From the IMG/VR virus record IMGVR_UViG_3300032770_000001, positions 186,001 through 250,000 of that record: a DNA stretch of 64,000 nt; one strand, given 5' to 3'. The notes beneath the pieces were generated by a model that searched no databases, had not been told where the DNA came from, and saw only the letters and a program-made list of their open reading frames with translations. Positions 3,473 to 21,258 of this stretch are shown one piece after another; position 1 is the first letter of the stretch; the number at the start of each line of letters is the position of its first letter. The position numbers and the translations under genes were made by a program.

Positions 3473-6298
3473 TTATTCAAAGAAGAACACAGCGCAAACG
3501 CCCGTACCGCCAGCCGTGGTGTTCGAGGTTGAAGTTGCGTTAACCACAACCGTAATACCATTGCTGAAGTTCGCCAAAGCGTAAGAACCGGGCGAAATGT
3601 TCATCTGAGCACTGGTAGACGCACTGGACGGTGCCGGAATCGGGACCGAAAACAACCAAGTACCAGTGGTCAAACCAGTGGTCGTGCTGGTATTGAAGAA
3701 GTGAATGAACAACGTACCTGCCGACGTTGATGTCGTTTGCAAGCTGATTGCCTGCACGCCATACAAGCTACCAGCCGAGTTCTTGATAACCGCAGATGCC
3801 GTGCTGTTGATGTACTTGGCTGTCAGTGAGCCTTGCGATACGGTTACCGGGGCGTGCGCCGTCCAAATGACGTTTGCCGGAGCCGCACCGGAGTTGACCG
3901 CAGCATCCACTGAAGCTCCAGCGTTGCCGCTGATGCCAACTTTCTGAACACCGGACGCAGCCGTGACTACGGTTGTTCCGTTCACCGATGCGAGGTCCTG
4001 ACGCAAACCACCGCCAGTCGTCAGCGACAGGGCGTTGAACGTGGTTGTGCTATATGCTGGAGCCGCCGTTGTTACCCAGCCGCCCATTTGTGCAATAGTT
4101 GGAGGCTGCACTGTAGCAGCAACCAGACCCGTGAAGATCAGCGTGGGATCGTGGATTTCGTTAGCACGCAGGGTGCAGCTTGCCGTACCGCTGGTGAAGG
4201 CTGAAACGCGAACACGGTAGTTGGACGCACCAGCCGCACCGATGATTGAGAAACTGGTAGCGGTGTTGGCAGAACCGAACACAATGCTGGGGACTTTGTT
4301 TCCAGTATCAAAGTACGTGCTTGTCCATGTGGTGCCGCCGTCAAACGAGACTTCCGGTACGATGGTGCCGATCAGTGTCCCAGCCGCCAAGAAACCGCCC
4401 ACAGCCAAATAGCCGAAAGCGTTGATGGTTGCTGCGGCGTTGAGGGCATTCAGGGTTCCTGTGCTACCGACCAGATCAGCCAACGCCCCAGCCGAAGCTG
4501 TGATAGTTCCCGAATCTACAACAACGTGCAGGTTGCTGCCCGTCGCTTGTACGACTGTCGCATTAAGGTTCGCCGCAGTCGCTTGAGTAACGGTGTTTGT
4601 CCATGTGCCGGACTGAGTCGCAGCGACCGTTCCGGTGACTGTTGCGTTCAGGTTCGCTGCCGTCGCCTGAGACACTGTGACTGCGTTGGTGATGGTGGTT
4701 AGGGTTCCGATGTTCCAAGTGCCGCTTTGCGTGACTGCTGCGGTACCGCTGACCGCAACCGTGAAGGTGTCAACGCCCGTCGCTACGATTTGTGCACCAC
4801 GAGCCGTCATCTGAGCATCGACGGTCTGTCCGTTCGTTACCGTGGGCTGCGTAGTATTGAATGCCCCGCCGATTTTGACAGGGTTCCCTGCGTTCGACGC
4901 ACCGGAGGCGGAATCGCCAACCACTGTGACGGGGTTGGTGACCGTGGTCAAGGTTCCGATGTTCCATGTTCCGGATTGGGCTGCCTGAACAGCAAACGTA
5001 CCAGTGCCCACTACGGTAGCGTTCAGGTTGGATGCGGTCGCCTGCGTGACAGTGTTCGTCCACGTGCCAGATTGGGTGGTTGCGACCGTGCCTGTAATCG
5101 TTGTTGAAGCGAGGGTAACAGCCTGCGCAGATGGGAAAATGACGTTGAGTTGTCCGCTGGAATTTGTAGACAAGCCTCGAACGTTAGTACCGTCGTAGCC
5201 GAGCGCAATGGTGCCGAGTGCGGATGAGGATTGGGCACTGCCCATTGCAAACTGTGATCCGCCGCCGAAAGATGTGATCTGGTTACCGCTGGCATCCACG
5301 ATAGCCGTTGCCATTGCCTTGGAGTTCGTGAGCGAGAAGCCTGTGACGCCGACAAGGTTTCCGGCGATGTTTACGCCCGTGTAGCTTGCGGAGGCTGGAA
5401 CCGCCGAGCCTGTCGCCGAGGCTGCGGCGTTGCCACTAGAACCCGCTTTTACATTGACCAGCAAGTTGCCTGCGGAGTCCAATTGAAGTGGTGAGGCGTT
5501 ACCGGAAGTAATGGTAGTTGGGGTCGTATTGAATTGAGCCCCGATCAGAATCGCGTTTGCTGGGGACGATGCATTCTGTCCCGCGAAATCAAGCACCGCA
5601 CCGCCATTGCCGACGATACGCGAAGTCCAGTTGCCAGACTGAGTTGCTGCTATTGTTCCCGTGACCGGGAAAGTCCCACCCGTACCTGTTACTAACCAAG
5701 CGGTCGTATTCGCTGTGTTTCCCGGCTGAACCGTCCATGTACCGCTTTGCGTTGCCTGAACCGCGAATGTGCCTGTCCCAACAACCGTAGCGTTCAGGTT
5801 GGCTGCGGTTCCCTGTGCAACCGTGAAAGACCCGGTTCCAGCGTTCGCAGTAACGGTGCCGGAGACGGGCTGGGTGACTGCTGATCCATCCACCTTGAGT
5901 GCACCACCCGCTGAAATGCTAGCTTTGTTGGTGCCGCCACTATCAAGAAGCTGTGTCGCAGAAGAACCCACGACCGTAACGTTTGTGGTTTGCGTCGGCG
6001 ATGAAGAGGTAGACGAGCCGGATGCAAATGTCAGATCAAGTTGGAACGTGTAGACGTTGGCAGGTAGTGGCGATGTTGTCGTAAGCGTGATATTGCCGTT
6101 CGCATCCGTCGTCACGGACGTGACAGGAACCGGGGGGTTATTGGCAGAGATAGCAGTCGGGACTACACCCGCTCCACCGAATGGCACAGCAATGCCGTTG
6201 CTGAACTGATAGAGGTTCTGCAAGGCGAAGCTAAACGTTGAAGCTGCACCGTCACCTTTGAGGTTCAAATAAACCGATATTACCTGTTGAATTGCCAT
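3473..6298 (-). CDS. long Thr/Ser/Ala/Gly-rich fibre-like virion protein (941 aa)
   Basis: IQQ/GDG N-domain, repeated QATAANLNATV and TQSGTW motifs, beta-sandwich-like C-terminus. Confidence 0.75.
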   Translation of the reverse strand: MAIQQVISVYLNLKGDGAASTFSFALQNLYQFSNGIAVPFGGAGVVPTAISANNPPVPVTSVTTDANGNITLTTTSPLPANVYTFQLDLTFASGSSTSSSPTQTTNVTVVGSSATQLLDSGGTNKASISAGGALKVDGSAVTQPVSGTVTANAGTGSFTVAQGTAANLNATVVGTGTFAVQATQSGTWTVQPGNTANTTAWLVTGTGGTFPVTGTIAATQSGNWTSRIVGNGGAVLDFAGQNASSPANAILIGAQFNTTPTTITSGNASPLQLDSAGNLLVNVKAGSSGNAAASATGSAVPASASYTGVNIAGNLVGVTGFSLTNSKAMATAIVDASGNQITSFGGGSQFAMGSAQSSSALGTIALGYDGTNVRGLSTNSSGQLNVIFPSAQAVTLASTTITGTVATTQSGTWTNTVTQATASNLNATVVGTGTFAVQAAQSGTWNIGTLTTVTNPVTVVGDSASGASNAGNPVKIGGAFNTTQPTVTNGQTVDAQMTARGAQIVATGVDTFTVAVSGTAAVTQSGTWNIGTLTTITNAVTVSQATAANLNATVTGTVAATQSGTWTNTVTQATAANLNATVVQATGSNLHVVVDSGTITASAGALADLVGSTGTLNALNAAATINAFGYLAVGGFLAAGTLIGTIVPEVSFDGGTTWTSTYFDTGNKVPSIVFGSANTATSFSIIGAAGASNYRVRVSAFTSGTASCTLRANEIHDPTLIFTGLVAATVQPPTIAQMGGWVTTAAPAYSTTTFNALSLTTGGGLRQDLASVNGTTVVTAASGVQKVGISGNAGASVDAAVNSGAAPANVIWTAHAPVTVSQGSLTAKYINSTASAVIKNSAGSLYGVQAISLQTTSTSAGTLFIHFFNTSTTTGLTTGTWLFSVPIPAPSSASTSAQMNISPGSYALANFSNGITVVVNATSTSNTTAGGTGVCAVFFFE

Positions 6299-6301
6299 CT
6301 G

Positions 6302-6745
6302 TTATTTCCCGCTTGCCGCAGCCATCGAAACTTCTTTCCATTTACGAAGATAGTCAATGGCGCTTTGTAAAATTTCTAAGTTATCTACCGCAAAACCAAT
6401 CATCCTGTTGCATCTCCGGCAAAGAAGCTGCCGAATTCTGCCCGTAGCATGGTCATGATCCACGTTTGGGTCTAACATTGGATCGTTGCATATTGCACAG
6501 CGACCTTGCTGCTCAATTATCATGCGGTCGAACTCTCCGGACTCGAAAGCATATTTCCAGTTCTTGCTCATTGTGGCTTTACAAGCTTTGCAAGCGTTCT
6601 GTAGGCCATCCTTCATGTGGCGATTTCTGTTAAAATTCTCTTCCACAGAAAGCAGTCGTGTACATGAAGAGCATCTTTTTAGTCCATTAGCAGACTGTGC
6701 TTCGCCCCTTACGGCTCTTTTATCTGTTTGCTTATTTAGACTCAT
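6302..6745 (-). CDS. endonuclease VII-family HNH (probable free-standing homing endonuclease)
   Basis: CSSC...CKAC zinc motif, then QQGRCAIC, VDHDHATGRIRQLLCRRCN, AIDYL; ATG 6745 overlaps the upstream TGA. Confidence 0.85.
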   Translation of the reverse strand: MSLNKQTDKRAVRGEAQSANGLKRCSSCTRLLSVEENFNRNRHMKDGLQNACKACKATMSKNWKYAFESGEFDRMIIEQQGRCAICNDPMLDPNVDHDHATGRIRQLLCRRCNRMIGFAVDNLEILQSAIDYLRKWKEVSMAAASGK

Positions 6746-9700
6746 TCTTCCGTCCACTCCACCCAGCAATCCCCTACCGGGGTTGTGCCTACCGCGCTGA
6801 GGCGAATACCAGCAAATTCACCTGTACCGCGAAGCACCAATCCTTGCTCGTTGTTGTCTCCGAATTTCCATTCGATTTCACCCGGTTGAACGCTGACCGC
6901 AGCGGTGACAATTTCGAAGCGTTTGGAGTTCAAGATACCCGCTGAAGTCGCCGTTGTTGCTGCCGCCGACCACTGGTTGACCACAGCCGTCTGTGCTGCA
7001 TTGTTGGAGTCCAGTTTCGCAACGTTTGCAGCTTGTGAGTTCGGCGTGCCGCCCGTCAGAGCCGAATAACGAAGCAACTGGATATCGCAAATCGTACCAG
7101 TCGCAGCCGATGCACTGAAGACGATGCGCGTGATGCGGATTGTCTTAGTTGCACTTCCCGTAATAGAGACTGTGGGTGCAGTTGCCGAAGCAATTGGCGT
7201 GAAGGCAACAATACCTACGCGGTAAGTCTGCTTACGACCTTCTTGGTTGACGTACAGACCACCTGTCGAGTCCACCTGAATTGCCACTGTTTGTGCAGCG
7301 GTCGGGGCCGGGATGGTGGTGTTGTACTGACCCAAAATTGCGAGGGCGTTAGTTGGCGCTGTACCTGCCGCGACCGTCCCATCGAGTGTCGCACCCGCGT
7401 TTCCAACGATTCGAGAAGTCCAGTTGCCGGATTGCGCAGCTTGCACGGCGAAGGTTCCGGTGCCAACCACAGTCGCATTCAAGTTCGCAGCAGTTGCCTG
7501 CGAGACAGTGACGGCGTTCGTGATGCTCGTCAACGTGCCGCTGTCGAGCACAGTATGTAGGTTGGTTCCGGTCGCTTGAGCGACTGTAACGGTGCCCGTG
7601 ACGGCAGTTGTGCTGCCGGAGTCTGCGATGACGTGTAGTTGACCCGTGGTACTCGTCAAGAGCGCACGAAGGTTCGTACCATCCGTGCCGCCGATCATCA
7701 ATGCGTTGGCAGGAACCGCAGCGCCCGTGGCTCCATCAACTGCCACACCAGTATGACCTGCGATACCGACCAAAGCCTGACCAGCGGTCCCAGTCGTGGT
7801 GAGTGCTGTTGTGCCGATATAGAGCGAGGCGTTGACAGGCAATGAACCCGCAACTGCACCCGGCCCTGTGCCGAATGTGCCGGATGGAACTGATTGGGTT
7901 CCGACAAAGATTGAAGCATTGACACCCTGTACGCTGCCTGTGGGGGCGGAACCGAAAGTGCTCGGTACTGCCGTGAGTGCTGTACCAGCCACGGAAGTAT
8001 GGTCAGTACGAACTGCACCCACCGTATTGAATGAGAACGTGTTCTGCGTTGCCGTCACGTAGGTTGGGTTGGCGGTCGTGACTTGACCACCGACCTGAAT
8101 CATGTTGGCAGGCTGCGAGCCGCCGATAGCGGCATCGAGCACTGCTCCAGTGTTACCTACGATGCGGGTTGTCCAGTTACCACTCTGGGTGACCGCAGCG
8201 GTGCCCGTGACTGAAATTGGCAGCGGGTTGCTGCTTGATACTCCGACGAGATTCCCACTGGAGTTGAAGCCGACGTAATCGGCATAGCTGGGAACCGGAC
8301 TGCCTGTAGCTCCGTTAGAGGCGGCAGTAAATGTGCCGCTGACGGAATTGACGTTGACTTTAAGAATACCGTTAACGTCGGTCTGGAGAGGCACCATTGT
8401 GCCATCCGTATAGGTCGGCGGGGTGAGGTTGTATTCTGCTCCGATTGCCGTACCGATGCCGGGGAATGCTGAACCAAAGTTCGAGGATGTACCGCCGCTC
8501 GCACCCGTTGCAACGATCTTTAGGTTGCCGTTAACGTCGAACTGGAATGGCCCTGTCTGACCGTTGGTAAATGTTGGAGCAACGGTATTGTAGACACCAC
8601 CGACAATCGATGTGCTTGCAGGAGCCGTACCCGGCGTCGTGCCAGTCATGTCGGAAGCGTCTTTCGTATTGAAGGTGCCCGTCCCAGCGTTTGCCGTCAC
8701 AGTTCCGATGGCGTTTGAGCCTGCCGGAAGTGGCGTGTTCGGGCTGAGAGCAACGACCAAAGATGTGTCGGTTGTTTGTGCTGCTGTGGATACATCCTTG
8801 ACCGTGGCTTTGCGCCAATAGTATTGCCCATCCGAGATAGCTTGGTTATTGCGAGCCGTGTCACCGAGTCCGCAACCATCGACATGCAACTCTCCGGATG
8901 TGCCATTGGAGATGTTGATCGCGGTCATGTGCATCGTGCGATTGTTCGGCCCGAATGTCGCATTCGGTAAACTGGCTACGATGTTTTCCGCACGGTCGAT
9001 AGCCCAGAACGCGGTTCCCACATTCCACCACAAGTAGTAGATGTGGACATTCCCATCCATAGGCTGTACGTTAGTGCCGGAGGGAGAAAGGTCTGCAATT
9101 TGACTACGTGTAGTGCTGGTGCCGCTGTTACCGGAATACAAGACAGCGTACAGGTTACCGTCGATACCGATTTCCCAACCGATACCATCGAGAACAGGCG
9201 TTGTCAGCGTCGGTGTCGCGAGCGTGTTGCCCAGACCCCAGAAACGATAGCTGTTAGTGGTGATCGGGTTATCCAGCACAACCCCCCACGTCATGCGCAA
9301 ATGCGTTGGAGACAGGAGTGGGAAGAGTGCTTGACTTTGCAATAAGCTGTAACCATTGACGGTTGTTCCCGGTACAAGGCTGGTAAAGCGGATATCAATG
9401 CCGCCCGATGTCGGATTGCTGCCCCCACTGCCGGAGCCTACATTCCAACGGTTTGTGGTATCAAGCCCATTGCCGAAGAAGTCACTGAACAGTTGGCTAG
9501 CTTCTTGAGTAATGTTGAGTGCATTGAATGGAGAAACAGTTGCCGCAACGTCGTTAGTGCGGTACGGTCCGCTGAGTGAGAACGGCATCGGCTCATCGAA
9601 CGAATTGGTGACTTCAAGACGATCTACATCGTTGAACCAAATCCAATCAATCGATATGGTCGTGCTTCCGGATGGGATGCCCGTATTTTGAATGTAAGCA

Positions 9701-12081
9701 ACCGGGCTCATCTCCGTGTAAGGTGCAGGTAAATCGACAGAATTTGTGGCTACTACCGTATCGTCAATGGACAATTCAGCACGGTTGCCCGAAAGCCCAA
9801 TGCGGTACTTATGGTCACCGAGAAAATTTGCTCCTCCATCGAAGTTAAATGGGGTGGACTCGATCTCCGTGCCGTTAGCCGTTGTGATGAAATTACCAAC
9901 AGTCGGATCGGTTCCGGAGAATTGAATAACGGCCTGCTCCATTGCGCTCGAACCGAATTGATCTTGCAACCCAAACGTAATAATCTGATTGGCGATGGCT
10001 TGATCGATGTTCAAATAGAACTCAATCACTAACGGTAGATAGTCGGCAAGACCCGCGACGATACCCGTGGTTGCTCCGGAGGAAACGCCGGAAGAAATGT
10101 TGACGCTGGAAGTAGAGACAGTGATGCTGCCGCCCGAACCTGTCTGTGAAGCGAATAGACCCGCGACAGCGGTTGAAGGTGCTGTCGTACCCTGATATGG
10201 TGAGGCTAGCGTTAGCTGGGTATCGCTGATGACTTTAGCAACGACAACATAGTCGCTTTCCGGATCGGCGGATTTTTTGATCCAATAACCAATTTGGACT
10301 TCACTGGTAAAAGCTGTGCCGGAACCCGTAATGTTAGTGCTGCTATTGGTGAAGTTCACCGTTCCGGTCAACGTGGCGACGAGACTAGACCCATTGAAAT
10401 GGTCACGGAATGAACCCTCATCTGTGAAAACTGCCCCGCGAACAGCAAACTGACCTGCTGCGTCCACGACGGGTGGTACGATTTGACCAGTAGAATACTG
10501 AGCGCCCAGATTCGGGAAGAATCCACTTATCTGTGGCGTCTGTTCTGTGACAGTACCACTCACCACCCAAGGCGATGTTCCTTGGGTCGTCGTTACTGTT
10601 CCACTTACGGGAAGAGGAGTTTGATCGCTTGCAACGGTGACTGGCACAGAGGCAGACATTGTGGTCTGACCAAGGGCGATAGGAGTTCCGCCAATCTGCG
10701 CGATGTTCGTGCTCGCGTTATTGGGTGGGTTGACGGAAACTGCACCCCCAGCGGTGACTTTGACCGCTACATAGGAACTGCCGCCAGCCGTGTTGTGTCC
10801 GTAGAGTACCGACTGTGTGATCTGCGCGGTATCCGTGTCTTCCGGTGCCTGACCGAGGAAGTTGCGATTGATCTGTACAGCAATAGATTGCAGAATAGTC
10901 TGCACGCGGAACGCAGTTTGTGGCGTAGCTCCGTTCGTGTAGACGATTCTGAAGTATTGCGCTTGGCGTCCGAACGGTACGGAAATGGCATCGCCAGCGG
11001 AAACCGACACGCTGCTGATAATGTCCCAGTTCGTGCCATCTTCGGAGAACTGGAATTGAAGCCCGTTGACAGCCGAATCTTGATCGCTAAAAACTGATGT
11101 ACGAATGGAAGTGTACGGCAAGATATTCGTTGCTGTACCTGTGAACACCCCACCAGCACCGAGCGGGGTAGTAGTAGAATTGTTCGAGTCAACAACGCCG
11201 TCAGCCCCCACATCACCGCTGTCAACAATGACATGCTGCGGCGTAGCGAAAGCGACTGTCGGGGTGTTTTGAACGAGAACTTTAAGTTGTCCGGTACTGT
11301 CGGTACTGAACACGCGGAGGTTCGTACCGTCGCTTCCGCCTACTTGTAGAGCATTGACCGGAGCAAGCGAGCCGGGGGTTCCATTGGAAATGTCCTCCGT
11401 GGTGAACGTGCCTGTTCCGGCATTCGCTGTAATCGTACCGCTGACCACCCATGGGCTGGTGCTTTGGGTAACAGCCACAGTCGCCGGAAGCGCATCGACA
11501 GTGACATGAAGATTGGATGGGTCAAGCTGGAAAACCTCACTGATATTATTTGCCTGACCAGCTTCGAGAGTGATGGTTGCCGTGCCCGTCCAAGGTGCGG
11601 ACGTGCTGACGCGGAACATGTTCAACCCGCCAGCGTTGATCGCCCATTGACCGTTGGTGGTTGTGTTTGTGACTGCTGAACCTGTGGCGGGGAATCGCGG
11701 AAGAACGTAGGCCGGACTCCAGTTTGTGCCATCGACCGAAGCCTCAAAATTCAGGGTTCCAGTCCATGTGCCAACGACATTAAACAGAATCGTTCCCGCA
11801 CCTTGACCACTAATTGCGACATTCGATGGGCTGGCAGTGATGGTGCCTGTGACAATGCGGTCAGCGGAGGGGGCAGAAGATACAACTACGGGATGCGCAA
11901 TTGTGCCAATGACATTTGACCCATCCCACATCTGAAACTTGGCGGTGCCGTTCGTCAGGGTGGAATCCGAGGCAGGAGACACCACAGCACCAGTGATGTC
12001 GTATAGAGTAACGTGCGCTGCTTTGCTAATCGGATCAATTGTTAATTGATCTGTCGAATTGCCCGATTTAATTATTGCCAT
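6742..12081 (-). CDS. very long fibre-like virion protein (1779 aa)
   Basis: T/S/A/G-rich; FEASVDGTNW and FQFSEDGTNW modules; TGTVNFTNSSTNITGSGTAF tail-fibre-like segment; repeats shared with 3473-6298. Confidence 0.75.
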   Translation of the reverse strand: MAIIKSGNSTDQLTIDPISKAAHVTLYDITGAVVSPASDSTLTNGTAKFQMWDGSNVIGTIAHPVVVSSAPSADRIVTGTITASPSNVAISGQGAGTILFNVVGTWTGTLNFEASVDGTNWSPAYVLPRFPATGSAVTNTTTNGQWAINAGGLNMFRVSTSAPWTGTATITLEAGQANNISEVFQLDPSNLHVTVDALPATVAVTQSTSPWVVSGTITANAGTGTFTTEDISNGTPGSLAPVNALQVGGSDGTNLRVFSTDSTGQLKVLVQNTPTVAFATPQHVIVDSGDVGADGVVDSNNSTTTPLGAGGVFTGTATNILPYTSIRTSVFSDQDSAVNGLQFQFSEDGTNWDIISSVSVSAGDAISVPFGRQAQYFRIVYTNGATPQTAFRVQTILQSIAVQINRNFLGQAPEDTDTAQITQSVLYGHNTAGGSSYVAVKVTAGGAVSVNPPNNASTNIAQIGGTPIALGQTTMSASVPVTVASDQTPLPVSGTVTTTQGTSPWVVSGTVTEQTPQISGFFPNLGAQYSTGQIVPPVVDAAGQFAVRGAVFTDEGSFRDHFNGSSLVATLTGTVNFTNSSTNITGSGTAFTSEVQIGYWIKKSADPESDYVVVAKVISDTQLTLASPYQGTTAPSTAVAGLFASQTGSGGSITVSTSSVNISSGVSSGATTGIVAGLADYLPLVIEFYLNIDQAIANQIITFGLQDQFGSSAMEQAVIQFSGTDPTVGNFITTANGTEIESTPFNFDGGANFLGDHKYRIGLSGNRAELSIDDTVVATNSVDLPAPYTEMSPVAYIQNTGIPSGSTTISIDWIWFNDVDRLEVTNSFDEPMPFSLSGPYRTNDVAATVSPFNALNITQEASQLFSDFFGNGLDTTNRWNVGSGSGGSNPTSGGIDIRFTSLVPGTTVNGYSLLQSQALFPLLSPTHLRMTWGVVLDNPITTNSYRFWGLGNTLATPTLTTPVLDGIGWEIGIDGNLYAVLYSGNSGTSTTRSQIADLSPSGTNVQPMDGNVHIYYLWWNVGTAFWAIDRAENIVASLPNATFGPNNRTMHMTAINISNGTSGELHVDGCGLGDTARNNQAISDGQYYWRKATVKDVSTAAQTTDTSLVVALSPNTPLPAGSNAIGTVTANAGTGTFNTKDASDMTGTTPGTAPASTSIVGGVYNTVAPTFTNGQTGPFQFDVNGNLKIVATGASGGTSSNFGSAFPGIGTAIGAEYNLTPPTYTDGTMVPLQTDVNGILKVNVNSVSGTFTAASNGATGSPVPSYADYVGFNSSGNLVGVSSSNPLPISVTGTAAVTQSGNWTTRIVGNTGAVLDAAIGGSQPANMIQVGGQVTTANPTYVTATQNTFSFNTVGAVRTDHTSVAGTALTAVPSTFGSAPTGSVQGVNASIFVGTQSVPSGTFGTGPGAVAGSLPVNASLYIGTTALTTTGTAGQALVGIAGHTGVAVDGATGAAVPANALMIGGTDGTNLRALLTSTTGQLHVIADSGSTTAVTGTVTVAQATGTNLHTVLDSGTLTSITNAVTVSQATAANLNATVVGTGTFAVQAAQSGNWTSRIVGNAGATLDGTVAAGTAPTNALAILGQYNTTIPAPTAAQTVAIQVDSTGGLYVNQEGRKQTYRVGIVAFTPIASATAPTVSITGSATKTIRITRIVFSASAATGTICDIQLLRYSALTGGTPNSQAANVAKLDSNNAAQTAVVNQWSAAATTATSAGILNSKRFEIVTAAVSVQPGEIEWKFGDNNEQGLVLRGTGEFAGIRLSAVGTTPVGDCWVEWTEE

Positions 12082-18238: not shown

Positions 18239-18535
18239 ATGCCTGTTGCGACGAAGACCCTCCCCCTTACCTCAGAACTTCTCAAGCTAACCGAGAAGCC
18301 CTATGAGGAGTTCAACGCAGTGCTGGAAACAGTCCGCACCCGCTTTCCGCTGGATGTCCAGTACGAGACATTCAACAAAGTGCTTTCCGAGGAACTGGTG
18401 AATAACCCGCTCCGGCGTGCGACCCGTATTGCCATTCGTGTAGCAATGGGCGAGAACGTGGACCGTGAACTCAAGCCTTTCAAGTCCTCGCCGCCGTTTG
18501 GAGAAAAGAAAAAGAAGAAAAAATTCAAAAAATAG
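18239..18535 (+). CDS. hypothetical protein with Lys-rich tail
   Basis: GAGGAG RBS; tail is encoded by an A-tract just upstream of the next promoter. Confidence 0.6.
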   Translation: MPVATKTLPLTSELLKLTEKPYEEFNAVLETVRTRFPLDVQYETFNKVLSEELVNNPLRRATRIAIRVAMGENVDRELKPFKSSPPFGEKKKKKKFKK

Positions 18536-18564
18536 TTGACAAACATTTTGAACTACGGTATTGG
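18536..18564 (+). promoter_or_regulatory. promoter of the structured-RNA/TerD-domain unit
   Basis: Perfect TTGACA, 17-nt spacer, then TATTGG (within the recurrent GGTATT motif); A-rich UP-like tract upstream; the -10 match is weak. Confidence 0.65.
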
Positions 18565-18631
18565 TATAGCAGAGAGATTAACGGAGCGCCCTCTTGGTCG
18601 GGGGCTTTCCACTTAAAAAGTTTTGAAGTTC

Positions 18632-18726
18632 GGGTCGGCCATATCAGCCGTTCCTTCTACATTCACTCGGACAAAGAACCCGGAGAATCTCGGCTCCGGG
18701 AAAATACGTCTGGTGATTTCCGACCC
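18632..18726 (+). ncRNA. conserved stem-loop RNA element, copy 1
   Basis: GGGTCGG/CCGACCC outer helix, CCAT/GATTT internal loop, ATCAG/CTGGT helix, TTCCTTCTAC loop, inserted hairpin 18679-18700. Confidence 0.75.
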
Positions 18727-18943
18727 AAAAATGGCCGGGGGAATCGAGAGCCCCCGGTCGAAAAGATTGTGATTGTCAGTACGACTAGCAACCGAACTGA
18801 CCCGGCCTACGGCGGTCCGCGAGGAACCGTGGGGAAATTTTGAAATAGAGCACCCAAAGCGGTCGGGTCTCGTGGGTAGCGGATGGGCAACCAAGCCGCA
18901 CAGAATCCCACCCCCGGAAACGGGGCATTGATTTTTGAAAAGC

Positions 18944-19014
18944 TTGGACGGCCATATCAGCCCTTCCTTCTACTTGACCTTTACTCAAAAATAGGTCTGA
19001 TGCTTTCCGTCCAA
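18944..19014 (+). ncRNA. conserved stem-loop RNA element, copy 2
   Basis: TTGGACGG/CCGTCCAA outer helix, CCAT/GCTTT internal loop, ATCAG/CTGAT helix, TTCCTTCTAC loop. Confidence 0.75.
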
Positions 19015-19035
19015 TTAGTTTGAAAGGATACGCCA

Positions 19036-21258
19036 ATGAGCAACAATTCGATTCTGATCCGTCGTGCAAACAAGTTCCTCGTCGAGGACAAGGGCACCAA
19101 GACCCGTGTATCCAACGCGGCTCTGGCTGCATTCAACAAGAACCTTCAGGACTTGGGTTACACCTTGTCCGCGAAGGCGATTCGCACTCTCCAGAAGCCG
19201 GGTGTGTCTGCCCCGTTCTCCGAGATCGTGGATGTCCTCAAGGAACTCCGTGGCGTCCGCAACTATCGTCCGATGTATCCGAACTTCCCGACTCAGGTCT
19301 TGGAAGCGGACGAAGCAGAGTTGTATCTGAACGCCATCTTCCACTATTTTTCTTTCGTGGTCGCCGACGCTGTGAATGATTCCAGCGTGATTTGGCTGCC
19401 GAAGTACAAGAAGGATCGTCGTGAGCCGCTGGACGAGAAGGTGCAGTTGACCGTTCTCGAAATCGGCACCGAGGACGATCTGGCAGCGATTGCGGCCCGT
19501 ATCGCGATGTCGAACACGTCCATCTCCGCGACGGACAAGGAAGACCTCCGTTCGCTCATCAAGGATGGCTACCTGCACATCGGTGCGGGTCAGGGCAAGG
19601 TCGGTAAGATTCCGAACAAGGAAAATCTCGCGGTCGTGGGTGCAGTCCTGCTGACCGAGAAGATGTCCTTCGGGTTGATTTCTGAGCAGTTCAAGACTGC
19701 CACGGATGTTCTCCGTCTCGCGACGGCGCTCTCCGATGGCGACGTGTCTCTGGCGGCTGACACCAAGTTCAAGTCGCTGCCGCGCTATATCCGCCGTGTT
19801 CTGGTTTCGATTTTGGAAGCTGCGGAGAACCGCGAAGAGGACATGCTGCGTCACGAGAATCGCTGGGTGAAGCTTGGACACTCGCTGCACATGGGCGAGT
19901 TTTACAAGCGTTTCCCGTTCTCCTACGAAGCGATGCTCAAGCTGCGCAACAAGAGCGCAATGCAGAAGGACCCGATCCGCACCTTTGGTGCGAAGGTTGA
20001 GATGGCACTTCGCGAGGGTGAAGTCCGCAAGGCGATCACCCTGTTGGCGAAGCGTCCGGGTGAGTTTGCCCGTCGTCTCGATCACCTGATGCGTCTCGAT
20101 GAAGATCGTGCTGAGGCGACCGTGGATGCATTCGAGAAGGTCGCGGATGACGTGTCCACGCCTGTGTTGTTGCAGGTGATGGCACACTTCAAGGCGCGTA
20201 ATACGTCCTCCATGCGTGTGGCGATGCCGAAGGGCTCTATCGCTAAGGTGCAGGTACTTCCTCCTACGACTTGGAAGCTGGACTATGTCCAGTGCCAGCG
20301 TGTTGCCGAAGTGTGCACCAAGGCATTGACGGCCCGTTTCTCCAAGCTGGCTCCGCTCGGCAAGGTATATGTGGACGAGAAGTTGCAGAACTACCTCGTT
20401 CCGTTCTCGCAGCGTTCCGCCAACAAGAGTCTGCGCACGATTGTGCGCGGTTCGCAGATCGATCTGGCGAAGGACAAGGACACGATCCGCTTCTTCATCT
20501 GGTGGAAGAACATCGACGACCCGGATACGAAGGCAGCGGGTTGGAGCGGCGACGGTCGCGTAGACCTCGACCTGTCCGCAGTCATCTTTGATGAGAACTG
20601 GAAGAGCCTGACCGACATCGCGTGGTACAATCTGCGTGCCGACAGCGGCTACAGCCACTTCCGCAGCTTCAAGGCGTGTCACAGCGGTGATATCACGAAC
20701 GCTCCGAAGGGTGCGTCCGAGTTCATCGACATCGATATTCCGGGTGCGGTTGCCTACGGTGCGCGTTACGTCGTAATGGACGTGCGCTGCTACACGGGGC
20801 AGAACCTCAATACCATTCCAGAGTGCTCGGCAGGCTGGATGCTTCGTGAGAAGCCGAAGTCTGGTGAAGTGTATGAGCCGAAGACTGTTGTGGACCGTAT
20901 TGACGTTGCGTCCGAAGCTACGTCGGTCATGCCTCTGGTGATCGATCTGGTTGAGCGCAAGGTCATCTGGATGGACATCGTGTCCACGAACCGTCGTGCA
21001 TACAACACGGCAGCGGGTAACCGCGAACAGGTCGCATTGCTGGCGGATGCTTTCACCAAGATTCGCAAGCCGAACCTGTACGAATTGCTCTCTGCGCACG
21101 CGAACGGGCGCGGTAAGCAGGTGTTCGATCCGGCGAAGGCGGATGTTGTATTCTCCGTTGAGTCCGGTATCCAGTTCGAACTGGACAAGATCGCTTCTGA
21201 GTACATGCTGAACGAAGCCCCGGCAAAGCCGAAGGCGAAGGCTGCCAAGAAGCGTTAA
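19036..21258 (+). CDS. large helical protein with C-terminal TerD-like domain (possible Ro60/TROVE-like N-terminus)
   Basis: AAGGA RBS; C-terminal DLDLSA, HSGDIT, SEFIDID, RYVVMDV fit TerD; N-terminal ~450 aa looks helical (TATDVLRLA...DGDVSLA); strongly biased codons. Confidence 0.7.
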   Translation: MSNNSILIRRANKFLVEDKGTKTRVSNAALAAFNKNLQDLGYTLSAKAIRTLQKPGVSAPFSEIVDVLKELRGVRNYRPMYPNFPTQVLEADEAELYLNAIFHYFSFVVADAVNDSSVIWLPKYKKDRREPLDEKVQLTVLEIGTEDDLAAIAARIAMSNTSISATDKEDLRSLIKDGYLHIGAGQGKVGKIPNKENLAVVGAVLLTEKMSFGLISEQFKTATDVLRLATALSDGDVSLAADTKFKSLPRYIRRVLVSILEAAENREEDMLRHENRWVKLGHSLHMGEFYKRFPFSYEAMLKLRNKSAMQKDPIRTFGAKVEMALREGEVRKAITLLAKRPGEFARRLDHLMRLDEDRAEATVDAFEKVADDVSTPVLLQVMAHFKARNTSSMRVAMPKGSIAKVQVLPPTTWKLDYVQCQRVAEVCTKALTARFSKLAPLGKVYVDEKLQNYLVPFSQRSANKSLRTIVRGSQIDLAKDKDTIRFFIWWKNIDDPDTKAAGWSGDGRVDLDLSAVIFDENWKSLTDIAWYNLRADSGYSHFRSFKACHSGDITNAPKGASEFIDIDIPGAVAYGARYVVMDVRCYTGQNLNTIPECSAGWMLREKPKSGEVYEPKTVVDRIDVASEATSVMPLVIDLVERKVIWMDIVSTNRRAYNTAAGNREQVALLADAFTKIRKPNLYELLSAHANGRGKQVFDPAKADVVFSVESGIQFELDKIASEYMLNEAPAKPKAKAAKKR

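Follow-up and report, generated by a model that had tools for sequence, protein, structure and literature searches.

To our knowledge, the gating of a ring-shaped RNA-surveillance protein by small adaptor RNAs is limited to Ro60 and its Y RNAs. The Ro-binding motif of Y RNAs, GNCGAAN0-1G (CGAA), lies in the 5' strand of a stem. A permuted tRNA-like module is the defining feature of the bacterial YrlA Y RNAs. In the Thermus phage phiLo, two Y-like RNA genes (Yrl1 and Yrl2) are located immediately upstream of the Ro60 gene.

The DNA analysed here (the window, a stretch of 64 kb) is part of a phage contig (455.7 kb) found in a wetland metagenome, and at the DNA level it has no similarity to cultured phages. 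The sequencing runs that contain its sequence are all wetland-metagenome DNA, and none of them is recorded as RNA. Between the end of one ORF (18535) and the start of an ORF of 740 aa (19036) lies a gap of 500 nt, which holds two related RNA units. By its layout, we regard this as a candidate ribonucleoprotein locus of the Ro/Y-RNA type, while by the membership tests given below its RNAs do not fall into YrlA, nor its protein into TROVE. With Ro60 (Rsr, TROVE)/Y RNA systems it shares small RNAs with paired ends, encoded near and co-oriented with a protein that is predicted to form a helical-repeat ring. As in YrlA/YrlB/Yrn2 and in Yrl1/Yrl2 of phiLo, there is a tRNA-like form as well as a hairpin form with a pyrimidine-rich loop, and related loci also resemble these systems in apparent co-transcription with tRNAs and in RtcB-type repair genes nearby. 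Unlike Ro60, the 740-aa protein has neither a Pfam TROVE match nor a vWA/MIDAS domain, and carries a TerD domain instead. Unlike Y RNAs, the units lack the GNCGAA/CGAA motif and have GGCYAY, UUCCUUCUA and RNUUUCC in its place; also unlike the known systems, the gene has arrays of up to 4-5 units both upstream and downstream of it.

Features of the intergenic gap

The gap contains no convincing ORF, which agrees with the preliminary description of this DNA as non-coding. The features found in it and at its borders are the following (positions in the window; R1 is the covariance model described in the next section):

18239-18535, + strand: upstream ORF of 98 aa with a Lys-rich C-terminal tail; the same position is kept in the closest relative (locus L002, 5336-5659); no family match
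18536-18564, + strand: putative promoter-like site, TTGACA (18536-41), 17-nt spacer including the first TTTGAA, TATTGG (18559-64)
18583-18610, + strand: small GC hairpin of the 5' block; folding no better than shuffled sequence (z -0.02)
18632-18726, + strand: RNA unit 1; R1 match of 50.4 bits, E 3.6e-11
18632-38/18720-26 and 18643-50/18707-14, + strand: helices P1 and P2 of unit 1; free folding agrees (z -3.3)
18639-42, 18651-59, 18679-18700 and 18715-19, + strand: other parts of unit 1, namely CCAU, the invariant loop UUCCUUCUA, an optional loop hairpin and GAUUU
18733-18911, + strand: lineage-specific GC-rich hairpins (the middle blocks), at 18733-59, at 18775-18801 and in two further domains
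18799-807/18861-69, + strand: 9-bp closing stem of a middle-block domain, with a GCGA hairpin inside
18872-18911, + strand: middle-block hairpin with a GCAA cap
18912-18936, + strand: terminator-like hairpin CCCCG-GAAA-CGGGG, then a T-tract overlapping the fourth TTTGAA; consensus-scan match only
18944-19014, + strand: RNA unit 2; R1 match of 61.9 bits, E 3e-14
18944-51/19007-14 and 18956-63/18994-19001, + strand: helices P1 and P2 of unit 2; the free fold equals the consensus structure (z -4.7)
18952-55, 18964-72 and 19002-06, + strand: other parts of unit 2, namely CCAU, the loop UUCCUUCUA and GCUUU
19019-19035, + strand: fifth TTTGAA; overlap with the AAGGA ribosome-binding region of the 740-aa gene
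19036-21258, + strand: gene of the 740-aa partner protein, with a predicted N-terminal helical ring and a TerD domain

The promoter-like site was not listed by the consensus scan, which needs a T at position 6 of the -10 hexamer. On its 3' side, a GGTAT..TATA.CAGAGAGA block is common to the window and L002. At 18912-18936, the GC-rich hairpin and the T-run of an intrinsic terminator are both present, as a prediction from a consensus match.

Using ARAGORN, no tRNA or tmRNA was found in the 64-kb window, as opposed to many relatives in which the RNA-protein module is located inside tRNA arrays. Two large ORFs of the window, with 1779 aa (6742-12081, - strand) and 941 aa (3473-6298, - strand), have no family match. 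Two long antisense ORFs of the 740-aa gene, 19015-21099 and 20790-21248 (both - strand), have counterparts in relatives, and the second had looked like a conserved neighbour; both were discarded as genes, since they reflect the conservation of the sense frame.

A family of structured RNAs

A 28-nt direct repeat at 18633 and 18946 was the route to relatives of the downstream protein. The same element flanks the protein gene there: two copies lie upstream of it in L002 and three in L003, while locus L006 has two copies downstream of the gene, among tRNA genes. IMG/VR was then scanned for a pattern of GGCTAT, CTTCCTTCTA and TTTCC with gaps between them, which yielded 65 stretches, most of them on phage contigs of more than 100 kb. 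From an alignment of 64 instances (A1) two helices were proposed, and the covariance model R1 was built.

In A1, 88.1% of the cells pair, compared with 55.3% after shuffling, and the covariation is 0.817 vs 0.191 in shuffled alignments (0/500), with slid controls at 0.13-0.22. Double changes occur in 13 of the 15 pairs. An independent set of 138 units that were reached via the protein only gives the same picture: 90.6% pair, covariation is 0.897 vs 0.188, and all 15 pairs show double changes. From its 5' end, a unit consists of P1 (4-8 bp, ending in GG), CUAU and P2 (8 bp), followed by a loop that begins with UUCCUUCUA, has a variable middle and ends in UA, and then by P2', RNUUU, CC and P1'. 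The internal loop of the family is GGCYAY / RNUUUCC, and the UUCCUUCUA loop is almost invariant. The loop sequence UUCCUUCU is invariant across phyla, in 137-138 of the 138 units, and the 5' element GGCUAU is conserved in 131-137 of them; the window has the version GGCCAU. In unit 1, P2 is closed by a G-C pair where C-G is usual, which is a compensatory change.

With its filters switched off, R1 matches the 64-kb window at two places and no others, 18943-19015 and 18630-18728. Overall it found hundreds of copies, with 229 matches in the fetched loci. The two stem-loops of the window are thus members of a structured RNA family without an Rfam match: Rfam 15 gives none in the window, neither at gathering score nor at E ≤ 10. 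No description of the RNA motif or of a TerD-linked RNA was found in the searchable literature and in Rfam. If confirmed, the family would add to Rfam a widespread class of structured RNA that is missing from it.

One subfamily of units (L037, L049 and L071, e.g. L049 6201-6842) has the loop CAUCCUUCUA instead of CUUCCUUCUA. In it, GGCU(R/W)R replaces GGCUAU, and the units lie downstream of the gene, mixed with tRNA-like long forms.

Arrays, tRNA genes and tRNA-like long forms

Many units are arranged head-to-tail in arrays of up to 4-5 with a spacing of 1-12 nt, and many are immediate neighbours of co-oriented tRNA genes. In L037, L049, L071 and L058, for example, a unit comes immediately after a tRNA-Lys gene, and L006 has a unit with tRNA-Val behind it. 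Members of about 140 nt contain a T arm, a closed acceptor-like stem-loop and a D arm within the loop, i.e. a module of the YrlA type. The Rfam model of YrlA (RF02553) matches these long variants at 29-51 bits with E-values down to 1.8e-10, all below its gathering score of 69 bits, and the alignment covers model positions 23-85, which is the tRNA-like domain; the stems and the conserved loops differ from YrlA. Both units of the window are short forms without the tRNA-like module, and the window has no YrlA match at E ≤ 10. If confirmed, the RNA family would explain unannotated gaps inside phage tRNA arrays.

Two of the tRNA-rich regions that hold RNA arrays also contain phage tmRNA genes (L026 7798-8154 and L031 6028-6373).

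Middle blocks and conservation between sister strains

Folding of the 214-nt stretch that separates the units gives GC-rich hairpins (-80.9 kcal/mol, z -2.3). The hairpins listed in the preliminary description (18733-18759, 18775-18801, TCC-GCGA-GGA at 18816-25, TGG-GCAA-CCA at 18884-93 and CCCCG-GAAA-CGGGG at 18912-25) were all recovered at these positions; the GNRA caps to which it had drawn attention are not conserved in anything found elsewhere. As R1 finds just two copies in the window, the middle blocks were rejected as further copies of the unit. It had been suggested that the blocks be searched with covariance models, and such a search picked out the two R1 units, with nothing in the middle blocks and no signal from Rfam. 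A comparison with the nearest relative gave no alignment beyond the units, and there was no closer relative in the metagenome collection.

A contig of a sister strain spans 18323-19061. It has 10 substitutions in the upstream coding part, and in the 500 non-coding bases it has 2 substitutions (18549 T>C and 18569 G>A) and two single-A insertions. Short sister-strain contigs that cover the start of the downstream gene show about 6-16% differences, and the non-coding region is the most conserved stretch between the sister strains. Since a near-invariant gap lies between divergent coding flanks, the whole gap, middle blocks included, looks constrained. Judged by this sequence comparison, the middle blocks may well be functional; a recombination boundary may be an alternative source of the conservation. 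Of the earlier proposal that they are additional non-coding RNAs, the near-invariance between sister strains speaks in favour, while homologues elsewhere are lacking.

One protein family accompanies the units

All ORFs were compared against each other across the loci, and a homologue of the 740-aa protein was the sole common neighbour (61 loci, most of which had been reached via the RNA pattern alone). In the reverse test, with loci fetched by the protein alone, units were present in 42 of 67 metagenome loci and in 27 of 28 genome loci. The RNA pattern alone leads to the protein and the protein alone leads to units, so the linkage holds in both directions. At the protein-anchored loci, every one of the 138 units has the orientation of the gene. 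Adjacency and strand are as for Y RNA and Ro60 genes, with a neighbour that is Ro60-like in its predicted fold and not a recognised TROVE protein. In protein subfamilies at ≤ 33% identity, no units were seen.

In a scan of genomes, at least 567 bacterial species were found to have the protein. Typical of bacterial genomes is a tandem pair of units that ends 7-25 nt before the start codon; in Paenibacillus amylolyticus, for example, the gene stands alone in the chromosome with two leader units and no other conserved partner. Units are also found directly downstream of the stop codon (L208, L196, L169, L049 and L078). A phage-like contig from the gut, reached via an Enterocloster "TerD family protein", has 4 units before the gene and 4 after it, and then tRNA-Met. 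Two cultured phages are among the carriers, XacN1 of Xanthomonas and Weasels2 of Rhodococcus. In the record AP018399.1 of XacN1, 3 units lie at about 288.9-289.4 kb, in a 500-nt gap upstream of ORF396; these units have TTGACA-N17-TATAAT promoters of their own, and a terminator hairpin is located between the last unit and the ORF. In Weasels2, weaker units follow gp266, and RtcB is encoded 3 kb downstream (L083 9278-10076). In an AT-rich clade of phages, the RNA arrays have beside them a gene for a Thg1-like tRNA-repair enzyme of the tRNA-His guanylyltransferase family (E 3e-31; L067 7741-8622, with homologues in L014, L020, L022, L024, L057, L059 and L066).

The 740-aa partner protein

An AlphaFold model based on 37 homologues had a pLDDT of 84.6, and the N-terminal domain modelled alone one of 82.9. 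In the model, residues 479-673 form a TerD beta-sandwich, which superposes on 2qz7_B with Z 14.2 (157 aa, 2.5 Å) and on 2kxt with Z 12.4. Foldseek matches this domain to 3ibz (E 8e-6), and its SGD and DxD motifs are conserved. The C-terminal domain has the TerD fold, in place of a vWA domain with MIDAS. Classical TerD is a stand-alone protein of about 190 aa in ter operons, whereas here the domain is fused to a helical ring of 470 aa and paired with RNA.

The helical ring spans about residues 148-456 in the predicted model. Among 48,161 chains, the best two matches of the N-terminal domain were Ro60 of Thermus phage phiLo (9l5y_B) and Deinococcus Rsr (2nvo_A). The aligned parts of the TROVE ring have 258 and 245 residues, with rmsd values of 5.4 and 6.2 Å, and the Z-scores of 8.7 and 8.0 lie in the range (8-9) in which helical repeats can match by chance. 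For comparison, bona fide Ro60 proteins differ from each other by 5.8-6.5 Å, and all other structural matches of the domain cover just a helical repeat of about 100 residues. Searching the 740-aa protein against Pfam gave no match even at E ≤ 10, TROVE (PF05731) included, and Ro60 was not found by phmmer or hmmsearch of PDB sequences. Foldseek gave no match for the N-terminal domain; in the ESM Atlas, the feature search gave no usable match for it and the structure search led to family members only. From the model, the N-terminal ring is likely to be Ro60-like, as a resemblance at the level of the fold only.

At the sequence level, the protein matches the NCBIfam model NF041916 (MXAN_6230/SCO0854 RING family) with E 1.7e-123 over profile positions 167-758 of 842; the score of 413 bits is below the cut-off of 600 bits. 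The NF041916 cluster was also returned by the ESM Atlas. The N-terminal RING (Prok-RING_4) is missing from the phage and Firmicute versions. In the literature on the SCO0854/MXAN_6230 family, no published function was found.

The protein also matches phrog_33734. From its size it could be guessed to be a major capsid protein, and this reading was rejected: the predicted fold is TerD plus a helical ring, and stand-alone copies in bacterial chromosomes contradict it as well. We suggest that phrog_33734 should not be annotated as capsid on the basis of size, and that a search for these RNAs should cover the gaps on either side of its gene.

Proposed function of the RNA-protein pair

By analogy with Ro60, the units are probably Y-RNA-like partner RNAs of a Ro-like protein. 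In this view, the gap is the RNA part of a conserved pair of RNA and protein genes, with two paralogous genes for an RNA of 70-100 nt. The ends of this RNA pair (P1), and the internal loop GGCYAY / RNUUUCC leads to P2 and the invariant pyrimidine loop UUCCUUCUA. As with Ro60 and Y RNAs, the RNAs may be transcribed with or beside the 740-aa gene and trimmed from a precursor like tRNAs, and the protein may then bind them to form a ribonucleoprotein. Its recognition surface would be the conserved internal loop together with the pyrimidine loop, while the variable loop, with the tRNA-like module in the long variants, would be the adaptor part. The unit nearest to the start codon may in addition feed back on translation of the protein. 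The arrays, the adjacency to tRNA genes and the separate promoters in XacN1 are counted as hallmarks of stable RNAs and support this view. Further support comes from the Ro60 matches of the N-terminal domain, from the RNA-repair genes (Thg1-like and RtcB) near the units in other phages and from the conservation of the gap between sister strains. The analysis establishes the RNA family and its structure, the linkage with the protein, the YrlA-type module of the long variants and the TerD fold, whereas binding, trimming, a Ro-like mode of action and a part in the surveillance and repair of RNA or tRNA in phage-host conflict are inferred. Several observations do not fit the partner-RNA model well. 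Pfam TROVE and the searches of PDB sequences for Ro60 were blank for the protein, as was Foldseek for its N-terminal domain, and the Z-scores are in the range of chance matches between helical repeats; the Ro-binding motif GNCGAAN0-1G / CGAA is absent, and the units of the window have no tRNA-like module. The protein subfamilies at ≤ 33% identity are without units, and the bacterial units 7-25 nt before the start codon, sometimes without a Shine-Dalgarno sequence, would also fit a cis-acting leader.

A broader reading goes beyond the partner-RNA model, and we put it forward tentatively, as possible. The pair may be a second Ro/Y-like ribonucleoprotein, in which a TROVE-like ring fused to TerD works with dedicated short-hairpin and tRNA-mimic RNAs that share the UUCCUUCUA loop. 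It would occur in many bacterial phyla and in phages of 50 to > 450 kb, and might serve the surveillance or repair of RNA and tRNA in phage-host conflict. It would be an analogous pair with other recognition elements and with TerD in place of vWA, present in many phages including cultivable ones. If confirmed, a function would be assigned to a large family of proteins of about 700 aa that are called "hypothetical" or "TerD family".

It is unlikely that the units are purely cis-acting leader elements that never exist as free RNAs, be it as aptamers (a riboswitch, perhaps for a TerD-linked ligand) or as operators for the gene's own product. Such leaders would account for the position of the units on the gene's strand and, in bacterial genomes, for the tandem pair close to the start codon; tandem riboswitches and autoregulatory leaders likewise have two similar structured units 5' of one gene. 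The stand-alone gene of P. amylolyticus, with no other conserved partner, would fit as well. In Paenibacillus, 7-12 nt without a Shine-Dalgarno sequence separate P1 of the proximal unit from the ATG, and in related loci an SD-like GAGAGGAGG is located just 5' of the proximal hairpin. This layout of SD, hairpin and AUG suggests that folding sets the spacing between SD and AUG. (The arrangement is seen in the Paenibacillus loci L230, L166, L171, L176 and L188, at about 2440-2500, and also in L174, L220 and L164.) However, units also lie directly behind stop codons, form arrays of 4-5, occur inside tRNA arrays and carry a tRNA-like module in their long forms, and in XacN1 they appear as separate transcription units with a terminator between the last one and the ORF. 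The units are thus not restricted to 5' leaders as the aptamers of riboswitches are, and neither an expression platform nor an alternative terminator/antiterminator pairing was seen.

The TTTGAA words

The preliminary description had taken five TTTGAA words as the signals that divide the gap, either as sites at which an endonuclease cuts a precursor into small RNAs or as boxA-like antitermination signals that protect a long untranslated transcript. All five are present on the + strand (18547, 18622, 18839, 18934 and 19019), and exactly 4 nt separate those at 18622 and 18934 from P1 of the respective unit (starting at 18632 and 18944). For these 500 nt, a first-order Markov model of the region predicts 0.31 copies, against the five observed (P ~5e-5 for this word). 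Since some hexamer reaches ≥ 5 copies in about 7% of the simulations, this excess is marginal when any word is allowed. With arrays that resemble those of tRNAs, it is likely anyway that a precursor of several units is processed. The words fall into single-stranded A/U-rich linkers, and RNase E-type enzymes cut linkers of this kind. A related word, TTTTGAC, is found before unit 1 of L002 at nearly the same spacing.

However, unit 1 of L002 is the only one among the relatives with such a similar word, and before unit 2 of L002 a TACTAT -10 box takes the corresponding place. The 11 related loci contain no comparable set, the homologous regions of relatives lack the word, and it is not conserved across the 5' flanks of the family. 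The individual words also have other explanations. The first lies inside the promoter-like spacer and is mutated in the sister strain (T18549C) while the rest of the region is nearly invariant. The second and the fourth are parts of A/U-rich leaders before paralogous units, the third follows a GC hairpin, the fourth is at the same time the terminator-like T-tract, and the fifth runs into the AAGGA ribosome-binding region. A boxA reading is not supported: the locus has no rRNA-type operon, no boxA-like sequence is conserved among relatives, and a long untranslated transcript that might need protection is lacking. We therefore consider it quite improbable that the words are recognised signals. 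Read from the sequence, they are linker, promoter-spacer, terminator T-tract and ribosome-binding sequence, with no apparent signal function of their own. What stood of the earlier proposal is that the gap encodes discrete small structured RNAs and is more than a simple untranslated leader, two of its blocks being members of a covarying family; TTTGAA as the signal that organises them did not.

TTTGAA was also considered as a phage-wide promoter word and rejected, as all remaining copies of TTTTGAA in the 64-kb window are inside ORFs. A Bacteroidota-type -7 promoter (TAnnTTTG) was a poor fit, and the phage uses Shine-Dalgarno sites.

A possible role of the pyrimidine loop in trans

In another model, the units act in trans through the UUCCUUCU loop as regulators or decoys, which either pair with purine-rich Shine-Dalgarno sequences (RRGGRR) or imitate 16S rRNA at its pyrimidine-rich 3' end. 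They would redirect translation or titrate an S1/KH-type protein, and the neighbouring protein would be a chaperone only. This would agree with a single-stranded pyrimidine loop that is invariant across phyla and with multi-copy arrays, which suggest stoichiometric action, as well as with Ro/Y ribonucleoproteins, in which the single-stranded part of the Y RNA contacts the S1/KH domains of PNPase. The loop may also resemble the 3' end of Firmicutes 16S rRNA, ...CCUCCUUUCUA. Taken together, both variants are very improbable, as no complementary target was found, the loop would pair with the phage's own Shine-Dalgarno sequences too, and the units strictly accompany one protein family, which speaks for conserved nucleotides that serve this protein.

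Additional observations at related loci

A contig labelled as uncultured archaeon (L161, MAG LFW-28) contains two units of 52 and 59 bits at 2290-2480, upstream of a homologue of the protein. The contig is archaeal by label, and it may be viral, wrongly binned or truly archaeal. In XacN1, a perfect TTGACA-N17-TATAAT promoter is located between two RNA units (L082 3540-3656). It is followed by a cloverleaf-like RNA, uncalled by ARAGORN and unannotated in the record, which has a non-canonical T loop and a 7-bp acceptor stem that ends in ACCA.
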